DNA of 62,441 bases, counting the filler, from Platydemus manokwari (taxonomy: Eukaryota), in NCBI GenBank assembly GCA_037951405.1. It is 6 parts of 6 records of this genome, joined end to end, with 100 filler letters (N's around TTAATTAATTAA, not from the genome) between each part and the next. Parts side by side here need not be neighbours in the genome. Positions count along the whole stretch, not along the records: positions 33,562 to 42,507 come from JBBMOY011324650.1; 5 more parts are not named here. One strand, 5' to 3'. The translations under genes were made by a program, and so were the position numbers. Positions 34,851 to 37,800 of the stretch are shown here, piece by piece. Positions within the stretch are counted from its first letter, which is position 1; each line of letters opens with the position of its first letter. The notes beneath the pieces were generated by a model. The model made no database searches, was not told where the DNA came from, and saw only the letters and a list, made by a program, of their open reading frames with translations.

Positions 34851-37800
34851 TCAACATGAAATACCTGATAGTGTTGAATGCATTGGAGTAGATCCATTAT
34901 CTGGCAACAATGTTGGATTAGTATTGTTCATAGATGATAGAGCATTGACGTGATTCATTTCTGGATTAGTAGACGATTCCATACCAGCGCTAGATTCACA
35001 GCCCATTACTGAGGGTAAAGCAATAGGAGCGGCTGTAGGCATTTGATTAGATGAAAGAGGCCGAGAAGTCATATCTGGAATAACCGGTGCAGTACTAGGA
35101 GTTGTGGTGGTAGTAGTTGATGATGTAGATGTCTGAGATGAGTTTGAGGAAGAATTTGCTGCAGATTGGGATTTAGTTTTACTTAAGGTTGATTGAATTT
35201 GTTCGAGTTTAGCCATTTTATTTTTTCGATTTTCCAGCTGCTTTTGTGTTAGTTGCTCATAGGGCTTTTGAAGATTAATCAAGCGATTGGGATTGTATTG
35301 ATGCTGGATGAAATCGACAACTGCTGGATGGTTGTTGTGAAACTGGTACAGGGATGTTCGCTGTCTCGAATATTCAACAGCAGCATCGTTTGCCATTTGA
35401 GTTGTAAACACCATAGCTTGACCAGTAGCAGGCGGTGGTGCATTTGGACCACCACCGATCATAACCATGGGTCCATTTGTTGGATAAGAAAATCGATGTT
35501 GATTGGGATATCTCATTTGACCACCGACCATACCGTCTAATGTAACATTATAAATAATAATTCCCATTCATTTTAGATAGAATTATTTGAGATATTTATA
35601 AAATATACAACAGCAAAATTCATTAAAAATCGAGAAAAATTAATGATTTGAATAAAATTACTATTTGATCATGAATGTGTCATGAATATTTTACTTATTA
35701 AAAATCTAGATAAATTGCTTTTGGGAGATATTTGTGGTTAAATTTATGTTGATTAACACAGTATGCGGGGGCATTTTCCAGGAAATTATTATAGCTTGAT
35801 AGTCGGAAAATTAGATTCTGGTGAATAAATTGAAAATAAAATTAATAATAATAATTATTATTAATAATAATAACAATGAATATAAAGTTAATTATAAAAA
35901 TAATTAATAATAAATACAACAATGAAAATAAAGTTAATAATAGTAAATTACATCTATTGCTTATCTCTCTCATCAATAAGATACCACACGTTACCAAAGC
36001 AACTTAATATGATCGAGTTTATTATTCGATAAATGAATTTCTCCATGAATAACAGAATAAACATGTTAATCATCAATATATTAACTCAGATATTCTCATA
36101 TTATCAGAACGAAAATTATACAGATTAATTGAAAGAATTAGATAATAATAATAATAATTATTATTATTAGAGAAAAATTCTATAAAGACAACTGGAATTG
36201 ATTTTGCGTGATGAAATTGGTAACGAAGTCTCGATTATCATATACCACCATATTTGCAACAATCGGCGAAAAAATATATTTTGCTTTGAAAAGAATAAAT
36301 AATTCACATTCAAATGATGTCACACTGCTACTTCTTATCAGATTCCCGATATTTGTATTAATGAAATTAAAATGGCTTTGACTTATCATTTAAATTAATG
36401 AAATTGTCTTGCTCTGGATTAAAACGCCGCTAAAATCAATTAAATATCGTCGGTTTTGCTATGATTATAATAAAAGCAACAGATATAGTTAATTACTAAT
36501 AGGTCTGTATGAGAAACGAGAAACAATCGAAATTTGTTGTTGTTGTTGGTGGTGAATTGTAAAAGAAATGAAAATGATAAACAATTTACCCCTTTGTGTC
36601 AGACAGTGACTTTCAATCGAAAATCTGAGAGAAAAAAAGTAATTAAAATGATTTTTTTTCCGTTATTTGGATGTCCTAAAATTTATAATATAATATGAAT
36701 TATCAGCAGAAACTGATTTGCTATTAAAATTTGTGAGACGGAGACATCATTTCCTTCGATTCAGAACTCCGTGATTTAATTCGTTATAAGGATATCAGAG
36801 AGAAAAATTCTCGTTTAAGAAACGATGATATCATGCCAAATTAACACAACAAATAATCGAATTGTTCGAGTACTAAATTAATCGCAGACAGTTAGATCTG
36901 AAAAAAGTATTGCATATTTTGGGAGACAAATATTAATACTGTTGTGGAACTAATAGATTTGATAATGATTTTGAAAAGAAACCTGGTATCAACTAATAAC
37001 AACTAATGATTAATTAGAAAAAATGCATACAAATAAGCAGTTCTTTACTAAGAAGCATCGAATTTCTCTCGGATCGATACGTAACAGTGGTTGTTCTCAG
37101 ACTTTTGTTGCGTGACAGTGTATTATTTTCTTAAATTGTTTGACAATCCCTTTAAAATGAACTACAAAATTAACATAAAGTCTGATATACCAAAGCATTT
37201 TTTTCAACAAATAATTATTTAGTCAGAAATCCTAACAAGAAACTAATAGGGGAAATTTTCATTGTAATTTAAGTCATTTATATAAATTTTAAGTTAACAA
37301 TTAATGACTGGATGATAGGCATAGTAATTAATATTATATCCCACTTGTTTGAGAACCACTGGTACCGTACATTGTCAGTCAATAAGGATGAAATAAATCA
37401 ATGATATGGCTCATTCAAATATAAAAGAACATAAATTTTTGTTATATTCGAATCGGTAAAGATTTTTTTTAATAAATTTTAATATAATTAACCATATACC
37501 AGCAACTTTCAGAATTACATGACAAAGAAAAATATAATATAATTGATACAACAACTCTGTATTCGACATTTTTAATGAACAAATTAATTTATTAAACATC
37601 CATTCCAATATATATCTACAAAAATGAATTCAAGGAACTGTTAAATTATTGAAAATAACGATTGAATAAAATTCTGTGCTTGATCAGTGCCAATGGAATA
37701 ATTCAAAACAGATTTTTAGAAATCCTTGAAATAAAAATAATGCAATTTGACCTTATCTACCAATTGAAGAAAAGTTTAAAGAAATTTGTTTTTTTAATAT

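Follow-up and report, generated by a model that had tools for sequence, protein, structure and literature searches.

An exon in the genome of Platydemus manokwari probably belongs to a real, diverged and so far unnamed flatworm orthologue of BCL9/Legless, as its sequence relationships suggest. BCL9/Legless is the adaptor which links beta-catenin to Pygopus in Wnt signalling; in planarians beta-catenin governs the choice between head and tail, and in tapeworm larvae it is a marker of the posterior pole, but to our knowledge the nuclear co-factors which convert flatworm beta-catenin into transcription have hardly been described. The flatworm protein is distinctive in its very short linker between homology domains 1 and 2 (HD1 and HD2), an Asn in place of His358, a probable DDT/WHIM1-like N-terminus and the loss of HD1 in flukes.

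The exon (exon C, Table 1) lies in the JBBMOY011324650.1 piece (33562–42507, 28% G+C) of the window, the whole 62,441-nucleotide stretch of P. manokwari DNA that was analysed. A first-pass annotation made from the sequence alone had described HD1-like and HD2-like peptides in a low-complexity open-reading frame at this position, and both were found exactly as quoted. The places it gave (~35417–35306 and ~35258–35183) were right, although each was one base off at one end (35307 and 35184). HD1 was said to precede HD2, as in BCL9, with about 16 residues between the two; they do so in the same exon and the same frame, and the residues counted were indeed 16.

Table 1. Features of the putative BCL9/Legless gene of P. 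manokwari; positions count along the whole window.
Feature	Position	Strand	Evidence and remarks
Open-reading frame, 238 aa	34851..35567	(-)	Contains both the HD1-like and HD2-like peptides
Exon C: Gly/Pro-rich lead-in, HD1, 16-aa linker, HD2, Ser/Thr-rich tail	34865..35536	(-)	AG acceptor 35538-35537, GT donor 34864-34863, phase 1 at both ends
HD1-like element A51-I87	35307..35417	(-)	Profile matches to BCL9/B9L/Legless HD1 chains; reverse tblastn
HD1–HD2 linker, 16 residues	35259..35306	(-)	Alignment; length and sequence differ among relatives
HD2-like amphipathic helix E104-L128	35184..35258	(-)	HD2-only profile; Pfam PF11502 (E 0.15, sub-threshold); reverse tblastn
Predicted intron, 5.7 kb, exons B to C	35537..41251	(-)	AT-rich, repeats; GT 41251-41250, AG 35538-35537
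Exon B (predicted), Ser/Pro/Gln-rich spacer	41252..41575	(-)	Open frame (ORF 41229..41552); AG acceptor 41577-41576, GT donor 41251-41250
Exon A	41814..42287	(-)	First ~85 residues, from (D)LRLYRE, are the end of the N-terminal domain; Gly-rich low-complexity stretch next

The coding unit is the exon at 35536–34865, with AG before it and GT after it, and the DNA match to a sister-species contig (L001, which encodes the protein P0001) is limited to 35538–34862. Nucleotide identity to this contig is 76%, whilst the encoded protein shares 93% identity over its initial 118 residues and 86% across exon C as a whole; synonymous sites are saturated, and pN rises from 0.021 in the HD1–HD2 core to 0.071 in the lead-in and to 0.138 in the low-complexity tail rich in Ser and Thr. 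The limits of the similarity, the synonymous saturation and the pN values together argue that exon C is coding and that the HD1 and HD2 islands are its most constrained part. None of the RNA runs contains exon C; the one run which does hold the exon (X1) is genomic DNA, and its contigs pass through the intron with no B–C splice joint.

The first-pass annotation had proposed a divergent BCL9/Legless orthologue which whole-protein similarity searches could miss, and both parts of this proposal were supported. Pfam searches of the whole open-reading frame and of the upstream open-reading frames gave nothing relevant, only low-complexity noise, a single-sequence phmmer search of the PDB found no BCL9, and an Atlas feature search with the exon gave no usable match. 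With residues 12–130 as the query, phmmer was run exhaustively against 1.84 billion representatives and returned eight relatives and one spurious repeat protein; none of the large protein-database searches, this one included, reached a canonical BCL9, the matches being flatworm proteins and unnamed fragments. The link to the family therefore depends on peptides in the PDB and on a single bridging sequence of metagenomic origin (P0009).

A profile built from the HD1–HD2 alignment of the relatives (A1) was searched against 177,635 distinct PDB sequences, and the top six entries were the HD1 of human BCL9, human B9L and fly Legless (E 4.7e-5 to 1.4e-4); BCL9 HD2 chains were also matched, at the correct profile positions (E 0.1–0.23). 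With P0009 left out of the profile, the HD1 chains remained first in the PDB (E 0.015–0.047), and a profile made from 16 flatworm HD1 sequences matched the B9L HD1 at 23.1 bits (E 5.8e-4 at the same database size). On flatworm-only data, HD1 thus reaches p ~3e-9 per comparison. In the reverse direction, the best six-frame tblastn match of the human BCL9 and B9L HD1 peptides in the 8946-base piece was at 35411–35337 (E 0.011 and 0.015, respectively).

The counterpart of the minimal human Pygo-binding fragment, V177–I205, lies at ~35414–35334. In the HD1/PHD complex, the strand Y178-V179-F180 pairs with strand beta5 of the PHD finger (Fiedler et al. 2008, PMC2726290), and T182, A185, N186, A189 and I200 are invariant, with V201 semi-conserved (PMC2726290). 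Exon C is identical at T182, A185, N186 and A189, has Leu for I200 and carries Tyr at the V201 position. Its strand reads M-V-F, the closing F-H is retained, and there is one residue fewer ahead of the I200 position.

An HD2-only profile run against the same 177,635 PDB sequences gave three BCL9 HD2 chains as its best matches (8y0p_L, 2gl7_C and 3sl9_C; E 0.045–0.16, all gapless), whilst a flatworm-only HD2 profile matched human HD2 at 11 bits, which corresponds to ~p 1e-5 as a single planned comparison and is not significant database-wide. The sole Pfam match of the HD2 29-mer was BCL9 (PF11502), which at 12.4 bits (E 0.15) falls short of its 25-bit threshold. In P0001, P0006 and P0009, too, BCL9 was the sole Pfam match of the HD2 segment, and for the cestode HD2 segments a phage coiled-coil family scored slightly above BCL9. 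The human BCL9 HD2 peptide found its best six-frame tblastn match in the piece at 35252–35184 (E 0.001), which is the HD2 core, L106–L128. On these scores, HD2 would be insufficient to carry the homology case on its own.

Of the published HD2 hot spots, H358 and R359 face D162, E163 and D164 of beta-catenin, and L366, I369 and L373 sit in a hydrophobic pocket (PMC9698307). In the gapless alignment R359, L366, I369 and L373 are identical in exon C and H358 is replaced by Asn; the reading of the canonical His-Arg pair as Asn-Arg in the first-pass annotation was confirmed in this alignment with human HD2. The substitution extends one residue further, as the human His-Arg-Glu is Asn-Arg-Lys in all flatworm sequences.

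In the reverse tblastn searches, the human HD1 and HD2 matches share one frame and follow the canonical order, with the next best matches to these peptides at E 0.2 or more. Two short motifs thus independently pick out the same family, with BCL9-family chains ranked top in the PDB, in the right order and with the functional positions conserved, which is strong evidence of homology. Compared with human BCL9/BCL9L (B9L) and Drosophila Legless, the flatworm protein carries HD1 followed by HD2 in one polypeptide, its HD1 core VF-S/T-T-x-M/L-AN-x-AA ... FH aligns, its HD2 core QEQLE-x-R ... L ... I ... L aligns without gaps, nearly all published Pygo-contact and beta-catenin hot-spot residues are kept, and the remaining protein is long, low-complexity and Q/P/S-rich. 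It differs from BCL9 in the two substitutions at His358 (Asn) and Glu360 (Lys), in the single residue missing from the helix-to-tail segment of HD1, in falling short of the Pfam BCL9 cut-off and in showing no HD3 in the piece. The linker between HD1 and HD2 is 16 aa in P. manokwari and 16–60 aa in its relatives, against ~145 aa in human (by residue numbers). A further difference is a conserved N-terminal domain of ~280 aa in the flatworm gene; we know of no canonical BCL9 with such a domain.

Every named relative is a platyhelminth, in line with the expectation of the first-pass annotation that this was a flatworm gene. Full-length cestode relatives were found in Hymenolepis diminuta (1058 aa, "unnamed") and Hydatigera taeniaeformis (1629 aa), further cestode orthologues in Taenia solium, T. 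crassiceps, Echinococcus multilocularis, Mesocestoides, H. microstoma, Rodentolepis, Spirometra and Schistocephalus, and trematode orthologues in Clonorchis, Paragonimus, Fasciola, Heterobilharzia, Dicrocoelium and several Schistosoma. The P. manokwari gene is about as distant from the cestodes as the trematodes are. In relatives from nine or more other sources, it is the two islands that stay conserved as blocks; cestodes and unnamed relatives conserve both, and digeneans conserve HD2 only. In the orthologues the N-terminal domain, spacer, HD2 and long tail are collinear with the P. manokwari exons, but identity is only 36–50% and the digenean members are without HD1. No cestode or trematode orthologue found carries a precomputed Pfam domain. 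The novelty claimed for the gene holds among these orthologues, none of which is annotated as BCL9: they are named hypothetical, unnamed or uncharacterised, or bear mutually inconsistent automatic names. The UniProt names LisH, LsmAD and SAM attached to some of them were discounted, being mutually discordant and without Pfam support. We found no paper on flatworm BCL9 or Pygo in the open-access literature. A planarian LDB/SSDP paper mentions Pygo solely as a fly partner.

Upstream of exon C, tblastn with the cestode orthologues matched 42288–41980 (E 1e-13 to 1e-19). This match falls in exon A, which aligns with the end of the N-terminal domain, a stretch of ~280 residues that every cestode and trematode orthologue conserves; earlier exons lie past the edge of the piece. 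The conserved domain represented by this exon (42287–41814) was absent from the first-pass annotation. Between exons A and C we predict a spacer exon (exon B, Table 1), and no orthologue match was found within the 5.7-kb predicted intron which follows it. Each predicted junction has GT-AG borders and lies in phase 1, and A-B-C stays in frame throughout. An independent contig of 11 kb, from a further relative (L003), carries N-terminal exons, then a middle exon and then the HD1–HD2 exon, all collinear on one strand, with an intron at the same position, ahead of DLRLYRE. Given this collinearity and shared intron position, it is very probable that a single gene encodes both the N-terminal domain and HD1/HD2.

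For the N-terminal domain, neither Pfam DDT (PF02791) nor WHIM1 (PF15612) gave a match at E up to 10 in ten members, exon A included, and neither PDB sequence searches nor Foldseek against the PDB found anything with this domain. In a language-model feature search its nearest neighbours were WHIM1/DDT/WSD clusters, one of them RSF1-like (0.88, 175 shared features). Of the ESM Atlas clusters, a WHIM1 cluster came closest (TM 0.51 over 222 residues) to an AlphaFold model made from ten sequences (pLDDT 64, with residues 50–130 at 83–94). When the model was compared exhaustively with solved structures, a single chain, Ioc3 of yeast ISW1a (2y9z_B), aligned along almost its entire length (Z 6.7, 205 residues). 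Domains of the calponin-homology type reached Z ~8 over residues 13–140 (112–125 aligned). The calponin-homology reading is not preferred, as it accounts for the first half only and helical domains often reach Z values of this size. A DDT/WHIM1-like module has modest support and is, we judge, a fairly likely reading of this domain. Its neighbours in features and predicted shape are DDT/WHIM1 partners of ISWI (yeast Ioc3, RSF1 and the CECR2/BAZ type), but it differs from these proteins in having no Pfam, PDB-sequence or Foldseek match, and calponin-homology domains score higher over its first half; on this predicted model the assignment is a modest lead, not membership of the family. The polypeptide would then begin with a DDT/WHIM1-like module of the kind found in partners of ISWI remodellers. 

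To follow HD1 and HD2 across the flatworms, HMMs of both were run on all the proteins collected. HD2 was present in every cestode and trematode model spanning the region, whilst HD1 was present in the cestodes and unnamed relatives and in none of nine digenean models; neither element was matched in P0033, from Schistocephalus, or in P0036, a second entry from S. japonicum. P. manokwari, with its HD1, does not share the digenean pattern. In the digenean models "TALV", which stands where an HD1 strand would start, runs directly into a short Pro/Gly stretch and then into HD2, and in Clonorchis the whole stretch from "TALV" to HD2 is one uninterrupted exon. When the complete loci of Clonorchis (31.8 kb) and Schistosoma japonicum (41.6 kb) were scanned in six frames, HD2 was found at 67 bits and HD1 was not found. 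The pattern points to a lineage-specific loss of HD1 in digenean flukes. As digeneans without HD1 keep both HD2 and the N-terminal domain, the two-sided adaptor role appears dispensable in at least one flatworm lineage.

Two other readings of exon C were weighed against a BCL9 orthologue acting in Wnt signalling. The resemblance could have arisen by chance or convergence, in a flatworm-specific chromatin factor with a DDT/WHIM-type N-terminus and a long Q/P-rich tail, whose helices mimic HD1 and HD2 and bind other partners. Both motifs are short, amphipathic helices of the HD2 type match Cavin coiled coils and DUF1351 at similar scores, the Pfam BCL9 match is under its cut-off, such an N-terminal domain is not known from canonical BCL9, and no HD3 was demonstrated. 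A chance origin would nevertheless have to produce two independent motifs, each with the BCL9 family at the top of 177,635 sequences and in the right order, with an HD1 p-value on flatworm sequences alone as low as that given above, and conserved positions which are exactly the published contact residues; we therefore consider it very improbable.

Somewhat less improbable, yet still unlikely, is that the protein is a true BCL9 descendant which has changed its job, and which no longer bridges Pygo and beta-catenin in Wnt signalling, having kept one partner or turned to Wnt-independent transcription through its N-terminal chromatin module. The digenean orthologues, with HD2 and the N-terminal domain but without HD1, would fit such a change, as would the fixation of Asn for His358 in all flatworm sequences and the contraction of the linker relative to human. 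In the P. manokwari lineage, however, HD1 and HD2 are under the strongest constraint in exon C, and all contact residues but one per element are retained. The preferred reading remains a BCL9/Legless orthologue, from which we infer binding to Pygo and beta-catenin and a role in Wnt output.

Because the contact residues are conserved, the most likely mechanism would be the known one, by analogy with the human and fly complexes of solved structure. HD1 would add a short beta-strand (MVF) and a helix (T..AN..A...L) to the rear face of the Pygopus PHD finger, whilst HD2 would lie as one amphipathic helix along armadillo repeat 1 of beta-catenin; the Arg of HD2, next to the Asn that replaces the His, would face the acidic knob, and Met/Leu/Ile/Leu would fill the hydrophobic groove. 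From these two proposed contacts it would follow that the protein tethers activated beta-catenin to chromatin-bound Pygo and its partners. More tentatively, flatworm BCL9 may be fused to a DDT/WHIM1-type ISWI-docking module, coupling beta-catenin (and Pygo where HD1 is kept) to nucleosome sliding, with the digenean HD1 deletion as a natural Pygo-independent Wnt co-activator; this combination is possible, and we do not regard it as the expected outcome.

Naming the gene provides a concrete target for RNAi in free-living species and for the transfer of annotation in parasites. It also offers natural variants for the study of the Wnt enhanceosome, namely the 16-residue linker, Asn for His, the fluke HD1 loss and a possible built-in remodeller docking domain. 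The groove between human HD2 and beta-catenin is a drug target, and, speculatively, the diverged parasite HD2 may be of interest to helminth research.

A third element, HD3, is the Chip/LDB-SSDP ligand; it forms a helix marked by an invariant Trp and a Phe/Tyr doublet and is said to be present in all orthologues (PMC5352222). Exon C stops ~105 residues past HD2 with no HD3 within it, and tblastn with the cestode orthologues gave no match in the remaining 1.3 kb of the piece beyond the exon. In the trematode orthologues a Trp-x7-Tyr element occurs at the distance expected for HD3, and in cestodes the Trp alone; HD3 is only faintly recognisable in these orthologues.

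The gene that carries the HD1-like and HD2-like peptides, the BCL9/Legless elements for Pygo and beta-catenin respectively, very probably opens with a conserved domain of ~280 amino acids (residues 1-285 in the flatworm protein P0012 and its orthologues), which Pfam did not recognise. Its closeness to the DDT/WHIM1 modules of ISWI partners is indicated by Atlas features, by Atlas shape and by a structural match to Ioc3, and such a putative DDT/WHIM1-like domain at the N-terminus is an architecture unexpected in BCL9. In a relative, a Logan contig of 49% GC (L003) contains the N-terminal-domain exons, a middle exon and the HD1-HD2 exon in collinear order within 8.5 kb, and an intron before DLRLYRE lies at the same position as in the window. 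Automatic UniProt names for three orthologues disagree, P0005, P0012 and P0023 being called LisH, LsmAD and SAM domain-containing; these names look like low-complexity artefacts. A Pfam search of P0005 gave no LisH domain, and precomputed Pfam domains are absent from all three proteins.

Judged by its sequence, the metagenomic protein P0009 is a bridge between the flatworm and canonical sequences: its HD1 (VYVFTT..LANEAAAAV) is nearer the human form and its HD2 matches Pfam BCL9 (E 0.015). A Trp-x6-Phe element, which may be the start of HD3, ends the P0009 exon ~85 residues past HD2.

Coordinates of the gene features and of the intronic repeat
Feature	Sequence	Positions	Strand	Remark
Exon with the last part of the conserved N-terminal domain	window	41814-42287	-	very probably same gene
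N-terminal-domain, middle and HD1-HD2 exons	L003	802-9255	+	collinear
Q/N/P-rich eukaryotic exon encoding P0009	L002	74-1729	+	ENA metagenome contig
Clonorchis sinensis region without HD1	L004	13943-14530
Compound microsatellite	window	~40277-40577	both	within large intron

Digenean trematode orthologues (P0014-P0021 and P0032, and the L004 and L005 loci) retain the N-terminal domain and HD2 and are without HD1, with 'TALV' followed directly by a Pro/Gly stretch, after which comes HD2, all in one exon. A search for HD1 in every frame of two whole loci, those of Clonorchis sinensis (L004) and Schistosoma japonicum (L005), found none. This absence suggests that in flukes BCL9 is independent of Pygo, or that Pygo itself was lost. 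The Taenia crassiceps gene model P0013 has HD2 and no HD1; HD1 is present in all sister taeniids, and its absence from P0013 probably reflects a gap in the gene model or in the assembly instead of a true loss.

The microsatellite in the large intron consists of (TA)n adjoining (CA)n/(TG)n runs and gives rise to two overlapping repeat-coded ORFs, and the contigs of the genomic DNA run X1 end around it.
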